A DNA stretch of 64,000 nucleotides, taken from contig FLMG01003780.1 of NCBI GenBank assembly GCA_900088475.1, forward strand, positions 1 to 64,000, in the 5' to 3' direction. How positions within the stretch are numbered: the stretch's first letter is position 1; every line of letters begins with the position of its first letter. Shown here in pieces: positions 3,397-63,631 of the stretch. Position numbers and translations under genes: made by a program. The notes below the pieces were generated by a model. That model did no database searches, was not told the origin of the DNA, and was given only the letters and a program-made list of their open reading frames with translations. Source of the stretch: Hyphochytrium catenoides. Its lineage: Eukaryota; Protista; Hyphochytriomycota.

Positions 3397-6300
3397 TTAT
3401 CGTCTGTGACGCTTTTTTGCTTCCTCTTCTCCTGGCGATGGCCCTAGTCGGTCAAGAACGGATCGCTTTCGGCTCGATTCTCTGTCACTTACTAGCTCCA
3501 GAGACACTTGCCGGTTCTTCAACCTTTCTTTTTCCTTATCGGGTTGCGAAGACTTACTACTACTCTCCTTCTCGTGTCTCTCTCTTCTGCCAAGTCCCCT
3601 GCTACTGTCTTCCCTCTCTCTTCGATCGTCCGGACCTCGTGCGGTTGCCAGTTTAGAAGTGGACGATGGACGAGTGGGCCTTGGCTCATGGGATGAGGAA
3701 GAAGGTTTCCGCTTAAGGTCATGACTGAGTCTTTCCCGTGACCGACCGCGACGCTCTTTCTGGCTCCTACTTCCAGCTTCTTCACGCCCGGCTTCCTTGA
3801 GCACGACGCGGTCCCGTTCTCGGCTCTCTTTTCTCCGGTCTCTGCCAGAGGGCCTTTCCTTTGAGTGGTCAGTACTCAGCCTGCCAAGGTCTCGTGGGCT
3901 TCCCCGAGGTGTCCTGCCCCTTCCGTCCAAGTCAACTCCATTCTCTGTCCGCTCGCTTGTCCGTCTAGAGTCCCGGTGGCGGCCAGGAGAGCTGCTCCTC
4001 CTAGACCTCGAGCTTACTGAACTGTCTTTGTTACTGCCCTTACTCTCGTCACGTCTTCTCCCTGACCTCTCGCTCGGCCACTTTTCCCGACCTTCAGTCC
4101 TACGGCTTACCCTCACATCAGCAGAATACTCCGCGTCGTCGCCTTCTTCCACCTGTCCTGTCCACCTGTCTTCAAATTCTTCCTCGCCAAAGTCCATGGG
4201 CAAAGCGGCAAACTTGATATCAGAACCCGAAGACTGTGGCGCGCCGCCGCCCTCCTGTTCCTTTCCCGCTTCACCTCCCCGTGACATCTCTCCAGAGCCT
4301 GAGCCTTCGGGCAATGATGAAGGCTGGCCGTCTTTAGGGGCCTTCACCCTCTCTTTACTAACTCGACTGACAGTCACGGGCTCATCCCGTCGTTTGGAGC
4401 GATCTCGAGAGCCTGATCGTGATCGCGAACGGCCCCTTCCGGGTGCCCTTTGTCTTCCTCCTCTTCCTCGAAAACGCGGCGACCGCTGGCCTTGACGAAG
4501 CGGACTTCTACTTCGAGATCTTCCTCGCGTTCCAGGACGGCCCTCGTAGCCCTCTTCTCCCGTTCCCTCGCCGTCTCCTCGATCTGACTCCGAGATGGAA
4601 CCACTCCTAAAGTCCTTTTCCCGTCGCCAATCGCCTTCTCTCTCGCGCTTGCGCCCTCTAGCCAAAGCTGGTCCTGGACCGACCATTGGAGGCATCATAG
4701 GCACTCCATCAGGACCAAACATGGGAGGCGGTCCACCGAACCATGGAGGCGGAGGTCCATCAAACCAGCCACTTGGGCCTCTTGGGCCCGGTTGCATGTT
4801 AGGGCCTCCAACCCAAGGCATACCTGGCGGCGAAGGTCCCCAGTGGCCAGGCCCACGTGGACCTCTCCCTCCTCCTCTTCCTCCTCTACCTCCTCCACCT
4901 CTGTCTCTTACCGGCCCTCTCCCTCGCCCTGGCGCTCCCGGCCAATTACCTGACTGAGGCTCGAACCACCCTCGCGGCCCTGGGAAGGCGCCAGGGACAA
5001 CCGGAGGACCCCATACAGGATGCGGAGGAGCGCCTGGCGGTCCCCAAGGTCCTCTGGGGCCTGCTGGAAGCCTCGCACGCGGAGGCGGGGGAAAGGGCAT
5101 CACGCCAATACCTCCTCCTGGGCCGCGTTCAGGAGGACCTCGAAAACCATGATCCATTATCCCTTCTTCCTCCTCATGAAGAACGGATGCTTTGTCCTGG
5201 ACGGTGCCCTCTCGTACTCTTGTATCTGTCGCTTTCGAGGGTGATGCTACCTTCTTCTCAGGAGCAGGAGCCTCTTCCTTTGCTTTGACCTTCTCCCCAG
5301 ACTTTTCATCTGCCACTTCTCTATTCAAGATTTATATAGAGAGAAGACGCAGGTGCAGCAAAGTGGTTAGAAGCCAAACTCTGACCTTGTTCAATCAGTG
5401 AGACGTCGTAGTAACTTACCCTTCCTCATTGCCAATGGCGGATGCCTCATCCTTCCCTTCTTCTAGCTTCACTCCTTCAGCTTCTTCTTCTTCATCCTCT
5501 TCTTGTCCTTTGTCTGCACTGTCAAAGATATCTCCTCCAAGCTCGTCATCATCGTCGTCGTCACCTTTCTTTTTATCCCCCTTGCTTTTTCCCAGAGCAA
5601 GCACAGCATCCGCCCGGCCCTGTATCGTAGCTCTTTGATCCCTTTCGTCTCTTTGCTCCTCTTCTTTCTTCTTCTCTTTTTCCTTCAAGAGTTTCTCTGC
5701 CTCCCTTGCAATTCTTTCCTTGTCAGCTTGTTCATTGCGAGTTCGCTGCAAATAGTCCTCCACTGAGACTCGAAGCTGCTTGTTAGGAAGCAACTGTCAA
5801 GGGTGAAAGCAGAGAGAAGTTATCTTAGTTTGACGACAGTACGACTGCCCGCCACGGTGGCATGATAAAGGTCAATGCGTTAGGTCCCTTAGGACAGGGG
5901 ACACCGCCACTGAGCCGACCAGATATTTTGCGAGGACAAAGGACGACATTTGAGGTGCACTGCGCATCAGACAGCAGAAAGCCAAAGCCCCGCGCCTCAC
6001 AGACACTGCCTATCAATGAAGAAGCCGATTCCCGCATTTAGCGGAGAAAGGACTGAACTCAAGAGAAAGCGAGAATGGTCACAGAGTAAACAAACCTTAT
6101 CTGGAGATACTTCCTGAGTTCCACATAGAGGACATTGCATATTCGAGTCGATTAAGGCAGACCGGATGCACCCGTCACATGTCGACTGCTCAGATTTTTG
6201 GGACAAGACGCAGGGGGGAGAAGGGTCAGAACGCAATTATAGGGCGCAGTAAGTATGAGTCAGGCAGTCTTGGGAAAGAACAATCAGATAATGGGCCTGG

Positions 6301-9071
6301 CGCGATCTCCTGATGCAAGGGAGAGGAGCGATGGTGGAGAACGGAGAACCCAAAGACACGCAAACGAAATGTAAGCCTCTCCTATATCGTACGGCTCATA
6401 TACACATGAACAGAAAGAAACAAGGATCCTAGGGCCATGTACAAGACGGACCTCGTGACAGCAAGGCACCAAGACCGCGTCCTGTATGAGCAGTGAGCAG
6501 ATGAGGCAGGAGAGATGTGGAGGAGGATTCTTCCTGAGCTCGTCAACAGTTGCGCTTCCGCCGCCTTTCTGCACCGCTTTCTCAAAGTCTTGCGTCTTAA
6601 CCTGCCAGCAGTTCGTATGTGTCACACACATCGTGTCGCAGAGATTGAAGAGAAAGAGAGAGCCCATATCAGAACCACGTATGCAGACGCAAAAGGTAGG
6701 TACTATAGAGCCATAGAAAAGAAAACGAGGCCACGCAGCTTACCGCTACGACTGCTAAACCTCCGCCCGGAGCAGTCACAATGGTTCTGCCGTCACCTAA
6801 GCGCGCTGCCTCCTCTTCTGTCACAGTCTGCAAGAATGTTGTGGGGATACCTGTGCGTTTTCGCACCTTGTGCTAGAGGTATCATGAACAGTTAGTGAAG
6901 AAGACGCTAGCTTGGTAGCGTAGCTCTTTGACCGCGGCGATAGCGAATTTAAGCAGGTAGAGCACCAGCACGAGATGCAAGTAGGCACCCATGGCTTATC
7001 ATAAGGCCCTTGAGCAGCATGATAGAAACTCAGAGCGGCCACGCCGGTAGAGGTGTTGCTTGAAAGACTAGTACACTCTTCGCTCAGTGGACAGACGTGG
7101 CCCACTTGCGATCAAGCTCAAGGAGGCGTTGTACTCACCGTGTCATACTTTGGATCCCCGTTAGTGGGACACTGGTTAATCCAGTGCCCAGGCTGGCCGC
7201 AGCGGTGGCAGATATACCCCTCAGGCGGCGTCAAGGACGGACCTGTTCGGCCGTACATCCCACGGCCAGGGCCATAGGGACCGCGACCTGGGAAAGCCCC
7301 TCGACCGCGGCCAGGCCCATTTTGGCCCCCAGGAGCCCCTACCATTCCTGAAGGTCCTGAGCCTGCACTCCATGTCATGTTGCCACCTGGCCGTTTAAAC
7401 CTTTGGTTTCTGTGTAAGAGCAAGCGAGTGAGGACATAGTAACGGAAAAAGGAAGCGAGATGAGAGTACTGACTGCCACCTCTCGAGGGACTACTTTTGC
7501 AGCAGGAGGGGCGGCGGCGATGCGGATTTGCGGATGACACGTAAAGACATTGGACTGACCGGAACTCAGCAGCTCTATTATTGATCTCATCCAAAAGAGC
7601 AACTTCATCCACCCCATTCTCCCCCTTTGCAAGGCTTTCTTCTCCCTCTCCCAGCTGTTCCATCACGCCAACATCCTGTCCCTCAGGCATTGTGGAAGCT
7701 AAAGGAGCGCCAGGTCTCGCAGGTGAGCCTGCGGGCGTGCCCTTGGCCGTGCCCTCTTGCGCTCCTGGTCTCGAGGGACTTGAAAGCTGGGACTCACTCC
7801 TACATTGCACACAGAGATAACGTAAGCAACACATAGATATGCTGGGATATGGAGCCAAAGGTCTAGGGCGAGGAACAACATTTAGCGTTAACGCTGAACA
7901 ATCCAAAGATGCAACGCATCGGGCGTGAGGACAGCATCAAGGGTTAGGATGTCGAGCAAAAGTTTAACCCTACTTGAGGCCCTGGCTTTGCTGGCCGATT
8001 TGAACGGTAGGCACTGCGTTCTGGTACTCCTGCTTCATGCGGGCGAGCAACCCCGTCTTAGCCACCGGCACTCTCTTCACTAGAACGCTTGTGTTCTTAG
8101 GGAGTAAGAAGTTCTCGTCCTCATAGGCTAAGAGACGGGTAGGGACCATGGACAAAGGGCACAAAGAAAGTGGTGAGAGGCAAGTGAGCCACGATGAAGC
8201 AAACTAACAATGAAGGGATATAGCATGGGCGTAAGAGCGCTAGACGGCAGCCGTTCCTCATGACAGAGTGCGCAGTCGTGCAGCTTATAGTGATGTGAAG
8301 CGAGGAAGTGTGATATCTCTTTCAAGAGAGCCGATGAGACAGTCCAAGGACTGTCCAATCGTTCTTCCTTCTTCACAATAGAGAGCTAAGGCTTCACGCT
8401 GCTAGGGCAGTCTTCCCGAAAGAAGTGAATGACGAGAAGCGCAAACTTTTCGCCTGTATAGGCTGCGCCAGCACTCGCCCCATCAGCTGATTTAACGCTC
8501 GCCGACCAGACTAAGGTACCGCCCCGTAGATACAGAGACAAGCAAAGAGGCAGCAAGAGTACTGCGGGAGGGGCAAGCTGAAGAACCAGCATCAACCTCG
8601 AGCAGGTCAAAGAAAGGTAAACAAAAAGAGCAACAATGACCCAGAGGACACTTCTTGAAGAGAAAAGATATCTGCACGGTCCAGCCAGCAATGAATTTCC
8701 ATTTTGTTAGGAAGGCCAAAAGGTAAACGCGAGTCAACAGATGTGTGCTCTCTACGTTCAATTAAACACTTTTCTCTCGTCTGGAAGTGACAATGAATCA
8801 ACAGACATGAAATGGACATCTTCAGGCTCCACTCAGGTTCCGTGAGATTGGCAGCTCCGTCTAGCGCTCTGAAGGTCTCGGTAATGAGGGCAGGAATGAA
8901 GTTACCTTGACCGGTCTGGGCGTCAGTGATCACCAGATCGAAATCCAGTCCTTTGTTTAGCTGCTTCTTCTCGACAATAGCCTTCTTTAGGTCATAGACC
9001 TTGATGGCGGTGCCGCCAAATGTGACGGTGTCATAGCTCTTTGCGCTCTTGAACTTAAAATGAACTGACAT
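3397..9071 (-). CDS. RBBP6: RBBP6/Mpe1-like E3 ligase and 3'-end processing factor (DWNN, CCHC zinc knuckle, RING, Pro/Gly-rich and RS-rich tail); 9 exons
   Basis: DWNN MSVHFKFKSAKSYDTVTF...LLPKNTSVLVKRVP; knuckle YICHRCGQPGHWINQCPTNGD; RKRTGIP; RING CLIC..VPCCHE|STCDGC..CPLC. Frame-consistent exons 9071-8906, 8127-7974, 7799-7560, 7409-7139, ~6866-6744, 6601-6452, 6185-6096, 5793-5420, 5320-3397. Confidence 0.95.
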
Positions 9072-9408
9072 CTTGCACGTAGAACCTCCAAAAGGCGAGC
9101 GAAGTGCAGGTGGCCGTTCCGGACGTGAGTTGACGAAAGAGCTCTGCAATGTGATCTAAAGATCGGCACCCTCTTCACCTCTCACTCTGGCGCCATCTCC
9201 CTCACAGACAGAAGAGTAGTTTCAAAGACAGAGCTAGTTGAATGACAGCCCCTACGCCTTTGGATTGCGTTCTACAACCAGCGATCCTCCCTATAAATAA
9301 AGGGCAGATAAAGGTGATCTCGCGCTTTGAGAGATTCTGAGCTGGCGCGGAATGGCGGCGAGGGTGTGGGTGAGATGCGGCTGAGATTGCAGTTTCCCTG
9401 ACAAGGGG

Positions 9409-9427
9409 AGAGAGAGAGAGAAAGAGA

Positions 9428-9480
<53 letters not shown>

Positions 9481-9690
9481 GAAGAGAGAGAGAGAAGAGA
9501 AAGAGAGAGAGAGAGAGAAAGAGGCAGAGAGAGAGAGAGAAAGAGAGAGAGGAAGAGAGAAAGGCAGAGAGAGGGGAAGAGAGAGAGAGACACAAGAGAC
9601 CGGGAGAGAGAGAGAAAGAAACGCGCCAAGAGAGCAAAAGACAGAGAAAGAGAGAGAAGACGGGGAGGGAGCAAGAGAGGGGAATCAAAC
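9409..9690. repeat. Compound (GA)n/purine-rich microsatellite upstream of RBBP6
   Basis: Long AG dinucleotide runs with interruptions; explains the spurious ER/LS ORFs. Confidence 0.95.
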
Positions 9691-10619
9691 AGGAGAGAGT
9701 TACGAGACAGAGGTCTCACTCCCCAACACATCCACCACAAACCTACTCCTTGCACTACCCACCCGGCCCCTTCATCTGAGACGGAGAACATTAGAACCAC
9801 CTCTTGCCCTACCCACCCTCAAGAGTCAGAAGGCGGATCTCCCCTTCACAGCTGCTCAGGTTGGCAACTCCGAGTTTTCGCTACTGACAATGTTTTGCCA
9901 AGTCACGTCTCGATAACTAATTCCTGATTCTCAATGCTATTGATTCTATTTTGAGCTGTCAATAATGATCTGGAGCTTCAGGAGATCGTCCGCAGTTCAG
10001 CATCGGCCATCAGATCCGCATTCTCTTCTGATGGTCTGCTGGCGCGCAGGAGCCGTCCAGGTGCTAGACACGTAAGCACCCTCCTGAGTGGTAGGTAAAC
10101 CTGAGGAAAAGCAGATTTCACCTAGTACTGCTGTTGATGAGCATCAACATCTACGCGGAATGACGGAGGATCCAATGTTTTCGTACCAATCGTAAGATGT
10201 GTTTTTGTTGTTGCTTAGGTGTGCGTCCTGGTCTAATGATCATCATACGCCCATTCAGGACGGTCTCTCTGTACTTGCCATCAGCGCAGTTTGCTACTAT
10301 AATAAAGAACACCTTATCGGTTGACCAAGAGCTGCAACCCGACAAGTGCAGAAGGAGTTTTCGTCAGAGTGATTCAAGGCTAGAAGTGTAAGTGACCCCT
10401 TATCCTGCCCGCAATCATTCGACTTACCAGGCCCTTGAGCTATAAGAACTCATACCCTCCTTTGCAGGACATTTGAAAGTACAGAGCTGAAGTTATTACG
10501 AGCTAGTGTGTCGTCATTCTATGATATGCTGACTGTGACGGCCGAGACGTTGATGCAGTTCGGACCCTAACAGGTCATGGTCTGCGCTGTTCCATACAAA
10601 TATTATGCTGTACACTATG

Positions 10620-13600
10620 TTATTCGACTTCCTCAACCATCAAAAGGGTTTTCGGTGACATGCCACTTTTCAATGTCCAGAGACTCAGTTGCTTCAAAAC
10701 GGCGATAGCGGGAACATTTTCGTCATCCTTGGCATCTCCTCTGGCCCCATGCTGCATGAGGAGCTCAATGCCCCGACAGAGCAACTCTCCGCGAACTTGA
10801 CCACACTTGTCCTGGTCTTCTTCACCCTCATACTTTACGCCCTGTAAAGCTGCCGTGTGAAGTGCGGTCCTTCCCATGCTATCCCGCTTGTCTGCATGCG
10901 CACCGGCGGCTAAAAGAAGCTCTAGAATGTTGAGGTCTTCTGGCAACATCAGTCGTGCTGCTAGGTGCAAGGGAGTCTCTATGAGGTTGTGGGTCCTCTT
11001 GCGGGATACTCTGCGAGGAGGGATTGGACAGTTTGCCACAGCTCCTCGAGCAAGAAGAACTCGTACTGCTGCTACGTGACGGTTGAGAGTGGCCCAATGA
11101 AGCGGTGTCCGCTGCCATTTATCTCGGGCGTCGAGCTTGGCGCCTTCCAACACCAACAGTTCAATGCACTGAAGACTAAAATAATCAGGGCAGGGAGGGT
11201 CAAACAGCCGTCAGGATATGCTGGGAAGAGCTATTTAGGAGATGGGAACATAGTGATAACGGACCAAAGTGAGTGCGGAAGAACGAAACATAAAAGGAGG
11301 AAGAAGAGCTGCCGGAACGACAAAGGGTGTCCCGAGCATTTCATAGAATAGAACCCAAGGAAGCTGCTATTCACGTTCAAAGAGGAAGAGAGAGAATGCC
11401 TAACGTCCGCCGTTACCTTCCCGCTCTCGCCGCACAATGTAGTGCCGTTTGTCTGTTATGATCACAGGCAATAACAAGCACATTCTTCCGACTTTCGTCC
11501 TTGTTTCTTGTGGTGGTTCTAATGCTCCGTGCTGCCCTCAAGAGAACACTTAAAGAAGAAGCATCACCAGCCCCCGCAGCTAGGTGGGCAGCCGTCTGGC
11601 CCGCTTTGTTCACGACTGTTACCTGGCTGCCTGCCTTAAGTAACATAGACACAACGTCCGAGTGTCCATGTGCAGCAGCCGCATGCAAAGGTGTCGTCCC
11701 TCGCTTATGTCGAGTTACTCCGGCGTCAGAAGACAAGCCCGTACGGAGCATGCAGTCTACCAAGGCCGAATCGCCCTGTGCAGCAGCTTTAATCAATTCA
11801 GAATTCAAAGTGAGTTCAAGGGATGAGGAAGTGGTCTCATCCTCCATTAAATCTGGTGGGAAAACATGTTCTTCTGCAGTGGTCGGGACCCCTTGGCTTA
11901 GTCTTTCCCCCATCTTAGGGGCAGAAATCCTGGTTTGATGGGGCTCGTCAGAATCCTCGACCCGCTCCCAGGAGTGTCCTACGTGGTTCTCGGGTGAGCC
12001 CAATTCAGCTCTAGAGAGCAGCAAGATTGTCAAATAAAGCAGGCACTTTAGACGTCAGGACCACATCCATAAATTAACTTAGTTCGGGAAGGTAAGGCGA
12101 TAGGGGAGACACTATTCAAACTCACCACGGGGAGCGCCAGGATGACAGGCTTGCTGGGGAAACAAGCTTTCTTCCGTGTAAGGGGATATTCGGTTGCAAA
12201 AATCTCGTAGCACACTGAACCTCATGAGGAGAGGAGGAAGGAGCTGCTTCAAGAGCATCTGCTCCCTCTCCGTGTACTGAGGGCGGCTGCCCTCGCTGCC
12301 AAAGATTGGCAGGTTGAGCACTTTTCTGACACCATTTATGGTTCGCAGCGCCGCTAAACTGTCACCACCGAGCACAAAGAAATCATCGGCAGCAGTGGGA
12401 GAGAACTGCAAACCAAGGATGTCCTTCCATACTTCACTAACTGCCAACTCTAAGGCTGAGTTCGAAGGAAGAAGCTCTTCTGTCTCTTGCCCCAGCGAGT
12501 CTGGAGCCTCGTGGGACCTAAGACTGAGCTGTGCGTGGTGGTTAGATAAGCTGGTCCTGTCCACCTTTCCACTGCTTGTCTTAGGAAGCTCTTGCAAGAT
12601 ATAGACGCGGCGAGGAAGAGCATAACTAGGAAGAAAACGTGTGCACCACGATGTGATGAGGGCCTGTAAGGCAGATCGCGAACTTCCAACAACAGCGGGC
12701 ATGACTTCTACAAACGCCACCAAATGTTGTCCTTCACTCTCTGTGCGTGGTGCTATCTCAGCTTTCTCTTCTCCTCTAGTGGATTCATGAGTATTTCTGA
12801 GTACGACAGCCGCAAGCTTCACTGCGGGGCTTTCACCGACGACTGTTTCCACTTCATCCAGTTCCAGTCGAACACCATTCACCTTGACCTGGCGATCGCG
12901 TCGTCCTAAGAACTCCAAGCATCCGTCTGCTCGCCACCGCCCTATATCTCCCGTCCTGTACGCAGGCTGGGCATTGACAGGGTAGTGCAACGGTTGGCCC
13001 AGGTCCGGAGGTGGACAGGAAGTAACAAACATCTGATTTGTAAGCTCCGGGCGGTTGAGATATCCCAGGGCCACTTGGGGCCCTACGATCAGTATCTCAC
13101 CCTCTTTCCCTTGGTGCTCATCGCTTGCCCTTGGTATAACCTCGAGCTCCTCATCAACTAGGAAGATTTGCGCAGAGTCCATAGGCTTGCCAACACAACG
13201 TGGCGACATCCCTGGAAAGCAACGGGCATCAGTCTGATAGACCGTAGCCTAAGGAAGCAATATGTAGACATGAGGTGGATCCATTCAACTAAGATTTTTA
13301 ACGGCGTGCATACGGACGTCCAAAGAAGGTAGGAAGAGAAAACTAAGCGTGGCAGCCAAAAACGGCGCACAAGGCACTAAAGAGCGAGAAAAGACGCGAG
13401 AAGAGAGCGATCAAGCTTTGTGAATGCCCGCAAAGAAACAAGACGGGGAAAGTCGCGCAGTAGATCTCACCTCTGTGACTCCATAGGTGTTGATCAGCTG
13501 GACCACACCTGACAGCTCATCCAGAAGACTCTGAGTCATAGGCTCTCCACCCATGACCACAGTCTTTAATGCAGGAAGCAACTGCGGGATCTCCCGCAAG

Positions 13601-14463
13601 TTAAATCCTTCCATTCCACTCCTGAACATTGTTGGGGTCAGACAGACATAAGTCGCTTGACTTTGTACCAGGAGAGACGGGAGCGAAGAGAGCAGGAGAG
13701 ACCGTCTAGGAAGACAAGCCACAGCCCCCGCAGTCAGAGCCATGAAGAGGTCACCGATGCTGGGATCAAAGGTAATCGAGGAAGCAACAAGCACGCGAGA
13801 GGCTGCACTAATGCCATGATGAGCCCGTCGTGCGCGGACGTATGTCGCGATGTTTAGCTGCGACGCAATGACTCCTTTTGGTCGCCCTGTAGAGCCCGAT
13901 GTGAAGATTATGTAGGCAGGCGAGGAGAGGGAAGAGAAATCTGTCTCGAGAGCAGGGGAGACAGCTGTATGCGGCGGTGAAGAGCTAGCTTTCGCCGAGT
14001 AGAGCACCTGCTCGTCGTACAAGCAGCTGTCCGCAAGAATTCGAATGGATTGACCCTTGAATCTGCTTTGACAGTCTTCATAGCTCTCCTGAGACACTAC
14101 TAGAAGCTTGGTGCCAGTCTCGTGGAGCAGAAACTCCAGGCGCTCAAGCGGCTGCGAAAGGTCGAGAGGAACGAAAGAGAGCTTCAACTGCCACACAGCA
14201 AGCTGCAGGACTGCTATAGAGGGCCCTTCTGCCGCTGTGAGTCCAATAACACCGCCATAGGGTGACCCCATGCCAGTGGGAGTGGTATCTTGCTCGCTGT
14301 CATCAATGCAAAAGCAATTGAGTTCTTGCCGAAGCCTCTCTGCAGCCTGTTCTGATGCTCGAAGAAGACTTCCGTAGCTGACCTCGCGGTTATCGAACCA
14401 AAGTGCAGGAGCTTCTGGCGTCTGCCTTGCTTGGCGCTGAAACTCCTCAATGACTGTCCCCAT
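10620..14463 (-). CDS. NRPS-like protein: adenylation domain, phosphopantetheine carrier (T/PCP) and C-terminal ankyrin repeats; 4 exons
   Basis: A3 YIIFTSGSTGRPKG, A4 TFDPS, GGE, A5 NTYGVTE|ATV, A7 YRTGD, A8 GRRDRQVKVNGVRLELDEVE, A10 PKTSSGKVDR; PCP DDFFVLGGDSL; ankyrins GTTPLHAAA, GQTAAHLAA, RQTALHCAA, QRTPLHWAT, ETPLHLAA, GRTALHTAA. Exons 14463-13471, 13248-12126, ~11978 (or 12008)-11417, 11175-10620. Confidence 0.85.
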
Positions 14464-16261: not shown

Positions 16262-17725
16262 TTACAGAAAGTCTAGCAGCTCTTGAACCACATTCTGTCC
16301 ATCCTCGTCCAGCTCTGGTTCTGAAAGAAATCTTCGTATGCTGCTGACACTGAGGCCCAAGCCCTTCAGATACTGCTGGTTCTGATACTCCTCGCGCATT
16401 ACCATCATAGAACAGATCATGCCGATGGCGCTCTTCTTGACTCTGACACTAGAGCCGGGGTTAACGAAACAGAGAGCGGCGGTGCGTGTGAGGTCCCAGC
16501 TTTCAATGGCTCGAACACCTTCTAGATTGAGAGCAACCTCCCACAAAACTTCCAGCGCTTCCGCTGTGTGCTCGTGGATATCTCTGTCTTCATCTATCAG
16601 TCTTGNNNNNNNNNNNNNNNNNNNNNNNNNNNNNNNNNNNNNNNNNNNNNNNNNNNNNNNNNNNNNNNNNNNNNNNNNNNNNNNAGGGAAACTGATCCTC
16701 CAGTTGCAACACGAGATAGCGCAACAGGTCAGCTGCCAGGTAGGAGCCTGTCTTCTCAAAGAAGTTTATAATCGTTGGTAGGCGGACCGCAATGCGCTCA
16801 CAATTCTGCCAGTTCTCATGGCCGTCACGGTCATCTCTGGCGAAATTGATCAATGCCCAGGCTGCAGCACTGACAGGATTTTCTTCCTTTGGTAAGGGCC
16901 CTGGTGCAGCCTCATCGAGCACAGAGAGAAGAACCTCAATGGCCGAGGTAGTTGCGCCAATTTGTTCTCGTGCGTCCAGGCTGTGGCACACTACATTTGA
17001 CAGCAAGATGATCACGTGGCAAAGCGACTCAAGCGAGACCACATTCTTCTTTTTCTCTGCTAACACGAGCTGTACCAGCTTCGTACCGCCAAAAACGCTG
17101 TAAATTGCCACAGCTCCATCTGTCTTGGCACTGAGCTTAGCCAGGTCCCTCGTCTGCAGCTCATTCAAGGGCCTTCCCCCTTGCATAGTAGCGTCAGCCT
17201 GACTAACTACGCGTTCAACTTTACGGCGAAAGAGTCGTCTGGAGGTTCTGTCCAAGGCGCCTTTCATAACATCCTCACCTAACAGCGGCCGCTGCGTTCG
17301 AACCATGACTCTAGTCCAGCGGGCCATGAAGGCACCTATTCTCACCTGTATTCCTTCTGTAAACGCTAGCCGTTGGTGCTAATGGTAAGCAGAGGGTTGC
17401 GAAGTCATTTCACTCTCAGCTTGGCAACAAACATTTCAGCAATGGCTCACGCCGGCACCATGACGCTGTTTAATGGCTAGCTCGTTCCCGTCAAACGCTT
17501 ATCCAGACGGAGGCAGCCTTGACTTACAACGCAGGGTAGCGCTAATATCTGCAGACTCTTCAAAAGCAAACAGCGGAATAGTAACAATTGTCGATTGTGG
17601 CAGGATTCAATCCGCGGCGCTGGGCGGCGGCGGCGGCGGCCTTGAGCTGGCGCTGGGGCGAGAAAAATTGCGAGTGCGCGCTTCTGATTCCCCAGCCCGG
17701 AATTGAGACAAAACGGCCCACCCAT
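16262..17725 (-). CDS. Armadillo/HEAT-like helical repeat protein; 5' exon uncertain; interrupted by an N gap
   Basis: ORFs 16590-17345 and 16262-16759 have ARM-like segments (HVIILLSNVV, AIEVLLSVL, AAAWALINFA, TAEALEVLWEVA). A possible upstream exon ends at a gtaagt donor near 17527. Frame across the gap is unknown. Confidence 0.55.
16606..16684. other. Assembly gap (N run) inside ARM-like CDS
   Basis: 79 Ns. Confidence 1.
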
Positions 17726-61259: not shown

Positions 61260-62407
61260 GGCCGTTTACTTGGCTCTAGCCACACAAATTGACTACTGTT
61301 TCTTACATACCGCCATCTTCGTTCGGCTACAAGTGCCTGACAGACGCCGATGGCCAAAGGACAAAAGCTTTTACAAGTACTATATTATGATAGGACGGTG
61401 TCACCTTCAAGCCCTTCCATCCCGCCTATCACCATAGACTAGCATCGGGCTCATGACAAATGCCGAAGATTATTGCCCCGCCAGATGCGGGCAGATTATT
61501 GAGATGTCAAGCTCTGAATGAGAGATTTCTGTCGAGATGCTTTTTATGAGAGGAGCACCATATATGACTGATAAATATAAATGTATGCCAAAATTCACAT
61601 ATCCAGGCCCAGACTATCAGGGATTCGCCCCCAACTTGAACCTCAATGATGTTACAATGTAGGAAGCTCATCTCTGTCAACAATCTGACGACTGAGTGGC
61701 CGAGGTACCAAGGTATCGCAAATTCAGTAATAATTAGCTCAATTTGGTTATTATGACGGTAAGGACGAGTGTTTTATTCGGAATAGAGTCTCTATTGATG
61801 AGTAGACAGTGGAGTTGCAGTCAACAATCTGCGCGGCATCAGCATGTGTGATGAGTGTTGGTTCTCACTCTGGACGGACCGCACCAGAACCGGCTGATTG
61901 TCAGTCAAGAAGTATTATGTTCTTCAGGGCTGGATCGTTAGTGGCTGCGTCTGATGGAGGTAGGTACTTCTCTTAGGGCTATCTTACCCACTGTCTCCTG
62001 ATGAGTAGAGCTCTGTCTCTGCTTCCTGGACAACGCTCATGAGAAGCAGATTGCAAGCCATGCTTTCCAACTGCCCTCCAAAGCTGAGACAAGTCTCTCT
62101 TCCCATTCCCTGCCTTCCTCACTTGTGCTGACACTTCCTTCTCATCAAGGCAGTTACCGATTGACCTTCTGAACCGCATCACGTAGAGCTGATATGAGGC
62201 CATATCAGCGGCAAAATAGGGGTCAACTCTTCCAGCCGTAGCTTTCAGCAGTCTCTTGTTATCCGTACATTCGGGCGGGACTCTAAGGTGACCTTGCTCT
62301 AGTCCCCGTATCTTCTCATCACCCACGCAACACACCTTATTGTGCCTTCTTGGGGCAAGACTCTCTTTAGCGGAGTTGTACAGAACCGGCGGGCCTTGCA
62401 GATTGTC

Positions 62408-63631
62408 ATGGGCACCAGGGAGCTTAGGATGGCCACTTTAAAAAGAGCTTTAAGCTGGGCCTGTTTGGCTTTGATTGCTTCATTCCAACTGCTTTCGATG
62501 CGCTGCCCATATGTGAGTGCTGATGGAGACCATAGCTCCCACTCCTCCGGGCCCACTCCATCCTCAAGCGCCATCTCACTTAGCTCTTCGGTTTGTGTTA
62601 CAACCCCATCAGATGCAGCATGCAAGACCTACACTTACCCCGATGCCGATGCAAGAGCGGATTTAGACAAGCTGTGCACTTCTATGCCCTTCATGATTGG
62701 ATGTAGCCTTCGGTCCCTGTGTGACGCTAAGTCAATTGTCTCTGAGAAGTACTGCGCACCCATCAGTCTGTTACAGACAATTTGCATTGAAGACACTGGC
62801 ATGAGCAGCATGCAAGGCTGTGCCAATGTCTCCTCTCTTTGTGGCTCTGGGGGTTCTGTCGTGGAGCAATGCAAGCAGAAGCCACCGATTCCCTCAGTTA
62901 TTGAATCATTTTCGACCACAAAGTTGGCCGTCAAGTCTTGCTCTCAGATGAACATGGACGGCTGCGACCTCTGTGTCTCTGAGAACAACTGCAAGGACCC
63001 CTTGATGGCCATGTCAAGACTTTGTCAGTCCATGTGGATGGATGAATGCCAGGAATGGAAAAGCATGTGCGACGCCCTGCCTGACAACGAAAGGCAGTCT
63101 TTAGCAGTCATCTGCGGCTCCTCTTCACCTAGCGAAGCCACACCTCTTATGCGGATGTACTTCCACACAGGCCTTGTGGACTACGTTCTCTTCAAAGGGT
63201 GGGTACCACGGACACCCGGTTACTATACCCTCACCGTCCTGGCTATCCTGCTCCTTGGAATACTCTCAACTCTCCTTCGTCTCTTTAGAAAGAATGCTGA
63301 GATGAAGTTTGCGATGAAAGACGCCAAAGATTCCGCCGAGGTCCATTCCCCTGCAGACAGAGGTGAAGCTGGGGTCGTCATAGTGAATGGCATGAAGCGC
63401 AAGGTACTATCACGGAAGACAATCCTCCTGCAAAACGCTGTCAGAGGCGCGTTCATGGCGGCCATAGTGACGGTGGACTACATGCTCATGCTGATTGCTA
63501 TGACCTTCAATGTCGGCCTGTTCATAGCTGTCGTGGTGGGCTTCAGTCTAGGCCAGCTCTTATTTGGGCACCTCCTGGTGGAGGAAAGGGTCGGCTCGCC
63601 CGGTGTGGCAGACCCAATGTGCTGCGGCTAG
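62408..63631 (+). CDS. CTR: CTR/COPT high-affinity copper transporter with signal peptide and Cys/Met-rich ectodomain; intronless
   Basis: MRMYFH..VLFKGW; TM1; YMLMLIAMTFN (MxxxM); GFSLG (GxxxG); C-terminal CC; repeats CTSMPFMIGC, GMSSMQGC, CSQMNMDGC, CQSMWMDEC. Confidence 0.93.
   Translation: MGTRELRMATLKRALSWACLALIASFQLLSMRCPYVSADGDHSSHSSGPTPSSSAISLSSSVCVTTPSDAACKTYTYPDADARADLDKLCTSMPFMIGCSLRSLCDAKSIVSEKYCAPISLLQTICIEDTGMSSMQGCANVSSLCGSGGSVVEQCKQKPPIPSVIESFSTTKLAVKSCSQMNMDGCDLCVSENNCKDPLMAMSRLCQSMWMDECQEWKSMCDALPDNERQSLAVICGSSSPSEATPLMRMYFHTGLVDYVLFKGWVPRTPGYYTLTVLAILLLGILSTLLRLFRKNAEMKFAMKDAKDSAEVHSPADRGEAGVVIVNGMKRKVLSRKTILLQNAVRGAFMAAIVTVDYMLMLIAMTFNVGLFIAVVVGFSLGQLLFGHLLVEERVGSPGVADPMCCG

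Follow-up and report, generated by a model that had tools for sequence, protein, structure and literature searches.

An NRPS-like adenylation-carrier gene with a predicted ankyrin-repeat C terminus in the stramenopile Hyphochytrium catenoides

The subject of this analysis is a nonribosomal peptide synthetase (NRPS)-like gene on the minus strand, between positions 14463 and 10620, of a stretch of 64,000 nucleotides from the protist Hyphochytrium catenoides (contig FLMG01003780.1, positions 1 to 64,000; hereafter the window). We propose, with a probability of about 55% and on the grounds of its sequence, that this is one spliced gene encoding an adenylation-carrier-ankyrin protein, which would act as a self-loading aminoacyl carrier docked through its ankyrin repeats to a trans-acting partner.

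A spliced gene in a eukaryotic contig

The locus consists of four open reading frames (ORFs) on the minus strand, at 13411-14463, 12112-13209, 11413-12033 and 10620-11156. Joining them by script at GT-AG splice sites gave a four-exon model running from 14463 to 10620, with a coding sequence (CDS) of 3264 nt that encodes 1087 amino acids (aa) and contains 0 internal stops. In this model, an adenylation (A) domain is followed by a carrier (T) domain, an 80-residue acidic linker and an ankyrin domain. The exons and introns are as follows.

13471-14463, minus strand: exon 1, aa 1-331; N-terminal part of the adenylation domain, motifs A1-A5; ATG at 14463; Pfam AMP-binding
13249-13470, minus strand: intron 1, 222 nt, GT..TAG; GC content 47.7%
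12126-13248, minus strand: exon 2, aa 332-705; motifs A6-A8, C-terminal subdomain of the adenylation domain (A9, A10), carrier domain with a loop insertion and a short tail
12009-12125, minus strand: putative intron 2, 117 nt, donor GTG/GTGAGT; GC content 43.6%
11417-12008, minus strand: exon 3, aa 706-902; acidic Pro/Ser-rich linker, N-terminal cap, ankyrin repeats 1-3; Pfam Ank_2 and Ank
11176-11416, minus strand: intron 3, 241 nt, GTAACG..TTTTAG; splits ankyrin repeat 3
10620-11175, minus strand: exon 4, aa 903-1087 and TAA; ankyrin repeats 3 (second half) to 6, C-terminal cap; Pfam Ank and Ank_2

Introns 1 and 3 are secure, since domain continuity is restored on their removal. Exon 1 lines up from its first residues with the beginning of bacterial A domains and has a phase 0 end at GAG/GTGAGA, and excision of intron 1 joined YGVTE to ATVYQT in a gap-free alignment to the YGPTETT of bacterial A domains. 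Similarly, excision of intron 3 produced one regular ankyrin repeat, TALHCAARAG-S-LQCIELLVLEGAKLD. Both introns had a lower GC content than the exons (47.7% versus a CDS mean of ~53%) and codon scores that were negative or near zero in every frame.

The gene is thus a resident eukaryotic gene, as seen from its introns and from its GC content, which does not depart from that of the window. Bacterial contamination was considered and rejected, given the three spliceosomal introns and a GC content of ~0.51-0.52 that falls inside the window range of 0.46-0.57.

An amino acid-type adenylation domain and its carrier

Profile scores were obtained with Pfam on exon and ORF translations, using gathering cut-offs. 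AMP-binding scored 155.8 bits (cut-off, 29.9) and AMP-binding_C 45.0 bits (cut-off, 24.5). An initial annotation made from the letters alone had described an A domain, a carrier and ankyrin repeats at this locus; all three were found where it had placed them, with their families above the Pfam cut-offs and the named motifs located. The spliced model contained A2 as LKLSFVPLD, A3 as FTSGSTGRPKG, A4 as FDPS, A5 as NTYGVTE, A6 as GEILIVGPQVALGYL, A7 as YRTGD, A8 as GRRDRQVKVNGVRLELDEVE, A9 as LPSYALP and A10 as SSGKVDR, the last with the catalytic Lys and encoded at 12576-12556 in exon 2.

We then compared both halves of the domain with known structures and families. Exon 1 matched bacterial NRPS A domains in the PDB best, including TycA, at 84-72 bits, and the top PDB match of exon 2 was the linear gramicidin synthase LgrA (183 bits), in an alignment that extended through the carrier domain. 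TIGR01733 (amino acid adenylation domain) was by far the top NCBIfam family for both halves, scoring 154.5 and 126.8 bits. The Lys2 family TIGR03443 reached 38.8 and 87.7 bits (cut-off, 1030), and acyl-CoA ligase models were likewise far below TIGR01733. Judged by these profiles, the adenylation domain appears to be a divergent member of TIGR01733. The resemblance to AASDH noticed earlier gained no support as a sign of kinship, as the top matches of both A halves among PDB structures and NCBIfam profiles were bacterial NRPSs (LgrA, TycA) and TIGR01733.

The ten positions of the substrate pocket, read from an alignment to TycA (5n81) and from a bacterial A-domain alignment, were D-P-G-C-V-G-T-V-Y-K. 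The Asp of FDPS, which had been proposed from the letters to bind the amino group, indeed fell at position 235 (GrsA numbering) in the alignment to TycA 5n81. This Asp235 and Lys517 (the K of SSGKVDR) are both kept, which would indicate an alpha-amino acid substrate. Read through the Stachelhaus code, a pocket with Gly at both 239 and 301 and without any acidic residue suggests that the side chain of this substrate is uncharged and either long or bulky.

The carrier domain scored close to threshold (PP-binding, PF00550, 24.0 bits versus a gathering score of 20.8), with LGGDSL at aa 624-629 (12372-12355) and the carrier serine at Ser627. We predicted the structure of exon 2 with AlphaFold2 using 75 bacterial homologues and obtained a mean predicted local distance difference test (pLDDT) score of 81.7. 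The model contained four carrier helices (exon-2 residues 265-278, 297-310, 327-343 and 347-362; block pLDDT of ~79-92) and, over residues 1-361, superposed on bacterial clusters of the A C-terminal subdomain plus carrier (A_C-PP) with a template modeling (TM) score of 0.71. Since these helices and this superposition are what a carrier would give, the model indicates that the marginal Pfam score masks a genuine carrier fold. A 16-residue insertion lies after the serine helix and before helix 3 (12301-12254; exon-2 residues 311-326), with a block pLDDT of ~63-65. Between the carrier and the ankyrins, the linker (aa 693-774) is rich in Glu, Pro and Ser.

Several features of this part of the protein count against a working loading enzyme. 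Motif A8 contains KVNG where the consensus is KIRG, the TIGR01733 scores add up to 281 bits against a cut-off of 317.4 (the domain having been scored as two exon pieces), and a word search with the carrier and tail region found no relatives. Together with the unusual pocket code and the carrier loop insertion, these features would fit a non-catalytic protein or sensor, in which the A-T unit binds or carries a metabolite without transferring it and the ankyrin scaffold relays the loaded state. However, the protein retains every residue that adenylation and thiolation usually require (A3, A7, the A10 Lys and the carrier Ser), and the fold is confidently predicted. We therefore regard a sensor as very unlikely and favor an A-T unit that would load its own carrier.

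The ankyrin domain and its predicted join to the carrier

The families Ank, Ank_2 and Ank_4 (PF00023/PF12796 families) exceeded their Pfam cut-offs across exons 3 and 4. We located six TPLH-type ankyrin cores, at aa 811, 844, 893, 926, 970 and 1006, within an ankyrin domain that spans aa 775-1075 including N- and C-terminal capping repeats and reaches almost to the stop codon. It comprises six canonical repeats plus terminal caps. The initial annotation had counted ~6-7 repeats and had also reported that no condensation (C), thioesterase (TE) or reductase (R) domain was present. Indeed, Pfam gave no match to a condensation (PF00668), thioesterase (PF00975) or reductase domain in the gene or in the flanking ORFs. 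The NAD_binding_4 reductase domain of Lys2, CAR and ATRR was likewise without a match in the gene and its flanks, and past the carrier only ankyrin families matched, with no AASDH/ACSF4 PQQ-like beta-propeller repeats. The idea that a C, TE or R exon had been overlooked in the vicinity was rejected, the flanks being without such a Pfam match.

The weak point of the model is intron 2, because it is placed in an unconserved linker. Its donor, GTG/GTGAGT, matches the full consensus and stands 12 nt ahead of an in-frame TAG at 12114-12112, which lies inside the putative intron and would terminate a stand-alone A-T protein. The acceptor region reads CTCTAGAG and includes a tandem AGAG at 12012-12009. 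The YAG rule favors the upstream TAG (exon start 12010) as acceptor, and introns 1 and 3 likewise end in TAG. Pairing this best acceptor (CTCTAG/, exon start 12010) with the best donor (exon end 12126) causes a frameshift and a stop after 11 codons, which speaks against a fused product. A productive join requires the GAG acceptor 2 bases on (exon start 12008) or another, weaker pairing; the other in-frame options were the TAG at 11978, which is preceded by a poor pyrimidine tract, the CAG at 11852, whose tract is good, and the weak donor 12122 paired with the TAG acceptor. The AGAG at 12012-12009 could represent an unproductive "poison" splice choice; alternatively, it could be a (CT)n(AG)n length variant or an assembly slip that toggles the frame.

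These facts leave room for two separate products, an A-T protein and an ankyrin protein starting at ATG 11913, with the fusion as an artefact of gene modeling. The A-T protein would then end at the TAG at 12112 or, through the upstream TAG acceptor, 11 codons into exon 3. Consistent with two products are the in-frame stop 12 nt past the donor, the out-of-frame pairing of the best sites and the good context of ATG 11913, with A at -3 and G at +4. Moreover, frame compatibility alone is weak proof of a join, since many GT/AG pairs are in frame by chance, and a search for RNA runs with the whole 3.8-kb stretch listed no run.

The composition of the region argues for a fusion, however. The upstream part of exon 3 (12006-11853), in which 11913 is the first ATG of the ankyrin frame, had an exon-like GC content of 56.5% and a codon score of +4.2 in the ankyrin frame, versus -13.2 and -11.6 in the other two. 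For reference, in-frame coding windows scored 8.9 ± 4.1 and noncoding windows -7.6 ± 9.7, and +4.2 was reached by 9.5% of the noncoding windows. The codon score of intron 2, by comparison, was negative in all frames. Separate genes would thus have to account for 31-51 codons 5' of ATG 11913 that are open, GC rich and biased toward the ankyrin frame, as well as for a consensus GTGAGT donor immediately ahead of the stop. They would also have to squeeze a terminator and a promoter into the ~200 bp between the A-T stop and the ankyrin ATG, whereas the other two neighbor gaps of the gene measure at least 1.4 kb. Finally, a dinoflagellate gene model with a transcript identifier, described below, has the same domain order.

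Because codon usage and GC content over the 150 nt upstream of the ATG are coding-like and only ~200 bp would be left for a separate gene, we consider it probable that the carrier and the ankyrins are on one polypeptide, joined by a predicted splice, and two products possible but clearly less so. For the carrier-ankyrin join of the initial annotation, the observations point both ways: a GT-AG join can be drawn in frame and exon 3 is coding-like in its upstream part, but the best pair of splice sites is out of frame.

The surroundings of the gene were also inspected. The downstream neighbor (7118-9149, minus strand) encodes a DWNN domain (66.6 bits) and a CCHC zinc knuckle in an RBBP6/Mpe1-type layout, and it perhaps extends to 3397, as a 643-aa ORF at 3397-5328 without a Pfam match may be its tail. 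The gap between this neighbor and the A-T-ankyrin gene contains a long microsatellite of the (CT)n/(GA)n type (9272-9800), with SL- and RE-rich mirror ORFs on both strands. Upstream, two minus-strand ORFs of 165 and 251 aa at 16262-17345 had no Pfam match. At the far end of the window (62342-63631, plus strand), a 429-aa ORF has a long N-terminal extension ahead of a Ctr copper transporter domain (97.9 bits).

Relatives, proposed function and meaning

We searched for relatives with several queries. Word searches, which reach proteins 0.55-1.75 times as long as the query, retrieved bacterial A-T proteins with exon 2 (candidates of 206-654 aa), with 35-37% identity at best among the top matches. 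Every one of the 120 best matches listed that had a source name had a bacterial one, and neither a fragment of this gene nor an ankyrin-bearing protein was among the matches listed. In an exhaustive search of representatives with exon 2, the best 150 listed were all giant multimodular NRPSs of 4,842-7,864 aa; single-module relatives are outranked there because the module scores of giant NRPSs sum. We therefore turned to a query alignment that combined exons 1 and 2 with a bacterial A-T scaffold of 644 aa, which reaches proteins of up to ~1,130 aa and would hide an orthologue of less than ~50% identity. Its best 120 matches were relatives of the scaffold and several long high scorers, with bacterial-type architectures only; six long high scorers that were retrieved proved to be two-A-domain proteins, and the 1087-aa product of the window was itself not found in the collection searched. 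Metagenome scans with exon 2 and with exon 1 gave 0 matches, and the clusters obtained from an atlas, whether by features or by fold, were all bacterial A_C-PP or generic ankyrin clusters. Close relatives (more than ~50% identity) are thus excluded in the size ranges covered, a result compatible with distant full-length orthologues, for example in oomycetes.

Known systems resemble the predicted protein in part. Ebony (A-T-amine-selecting domain), AASDH/ACSF4 (A-T-PQQ-like repeats) and Lys2/CAR/ATRR (A-T-R) likewise consist of a single eukaryotic A-T unit followed by one non-NRPS C-terminal domain. Unlike here, that domain is catalytic or at least not an ankyrin domain, and none of these domains was found in the present protein. 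Bacterial A-T didomains and NRPS modules (LgrA, TycA, P0151-P0154) share motifs, fold and 35-37% identity over the C-terminal half of the A domain and the carrier. They have no ankyrin domain, however, and are usually clustered with C or TE partners; spliceosomal introns and a eukaryotic setting set the present gene apart from them. By analogy only, ACBD6 and plant ACBP1/2 also fuse a holder of an activated acyl thioester to docking ankyrins, since they combine an acyl-CoA-binding domain with ankyrin repeats that bind a partner enzyme; their acyl-binding domain is unrelated, and they perform neither adenylation nor covalent loading.

The closest likeness came from dinoflagellates. In Symbiodiniaceae, fusion to ankyrin, HEAT or PPR repeats is frequent among monofunctional NRPS and polyketide synthase (PKS) domains (Beedessee et al. 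2019; PMC6361889). The tables of that study hold A-, C-, KS- and AT-ankyrin fusions, among them "C-Ank x5" (Table S3), a Breviolum "A-Ank" model of 1893 aa and the Cladocopium model s1214_g6.t3, a protein of 962 aa listed as "A-PP-Ank-Ank" with a transcript identifier and with S. microadriaticum OLQ14049.1 as its best match (Table S4). The Cladocopium model shares with the gene model presented here its Pfam order (AMP-binding, PP-binding, ankyrin), a similar size and the lack of a release domain. It differs in belonging to an alveolate rather than a stramenopile and is tabulated without an assigned function, and the likeness was drawn from the domain table. Dinoflagellate A-PP-Ank proteins were not among the listed matches of our exon 2 and scaffold searches.

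In the literature searched, we found no paper characterizing an A-T-ankyrin enzyme and no functional study of one. The suggestion that the architecture was undescribed is thus supported as regards characterized proteins and weakened for the layout as such, as "A-PP-Ank-Ank" had already been tabulated (PMC6361889). The layout is a variant of the NRPS-like A-T-X theme, tabulated but not studied in dinoflagellates. A further association of the two components is described in a passage of PMC10512218, in which the ankyrin protein AsaA is encoded next to the NRPS-like AsaC in the aspergillic acid cluster of Aspergillus. As in the present gene, an ankyrin protein is there associated with an NRPS-like A-T enzyme; there, however, AsaA is encoded as a protein of its own and AsaC carries a reductase domain, and the passage assigns no role to AsaA.

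How the H. catenoides protein might work can be outlined from its domains. The A domain would adenylate an alpha-amino acid, which would then be loaded as a thioester on the phosphopantetheine arm of the protein's own carrier. With no condensation, thioesterase or reductase domain, the protein would be unable to finish the reaction alone, and the loaded carrier would be left without a means of release. We propose that the ankyrin domain, on its flexible acidic linker, docks the carrier to a separately encoded partner, such as a condensation-type enzyme, a tailoring enzyme or a hydrolase, that would take or process the aminoacyl group. Two results speak against this docking arrangement: no partner gene was visible nearby, and no relative with an A-carrier-ankyrin layout was retrieved in the exon, scaffold, carrier-tail or metagenome searches.

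The ankyrins might instead bind a target protein, whose lysine or N terminus would attack the carrier thioester, so that the protein would act as a ribosome-independent aminoacyl-protein ligase and leave a post-translational mark. Ankyrin repeats are established protein-binding modules, the carrier could extend to a bound partner on its long flexible linker, and the protein has no release domain. However, no catalytic element for amide formation was visible, no precedent was found in the literature searched, and ordinary docking to an enzyme partner fits the data equally well. We thus consider such a ligase very unlikely. Its wider form, in which the ankyrins bind a substrate protein and the gene represents an NRPS-derived writer of an aminoacyl mark common to stramenopiles and dinoflagellates, would be highly speculative.

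We therefore retain docking to a trans-acting enzyme partner as the preferred reading. Where a single A-T unit ends in an unusual domain, as in Ebony, AASDH, Lys2 and ATRR, it has repeatedly proved to serve primary-metabolic or signaling chemistry and not peptide synthesis. The identity of the partner would tell which kind of product is made, a small molecule or a modified protein. An A-T unit that ends in a pure docking module would offer a model of how a "disassembled" eukaryotic NRPS could stay together. Given the A-, C-, KS- and AT-ankyrin fusions of dinoflagellates, these lineages may use fusion to ankyrin repeats as a general principle of assembly.

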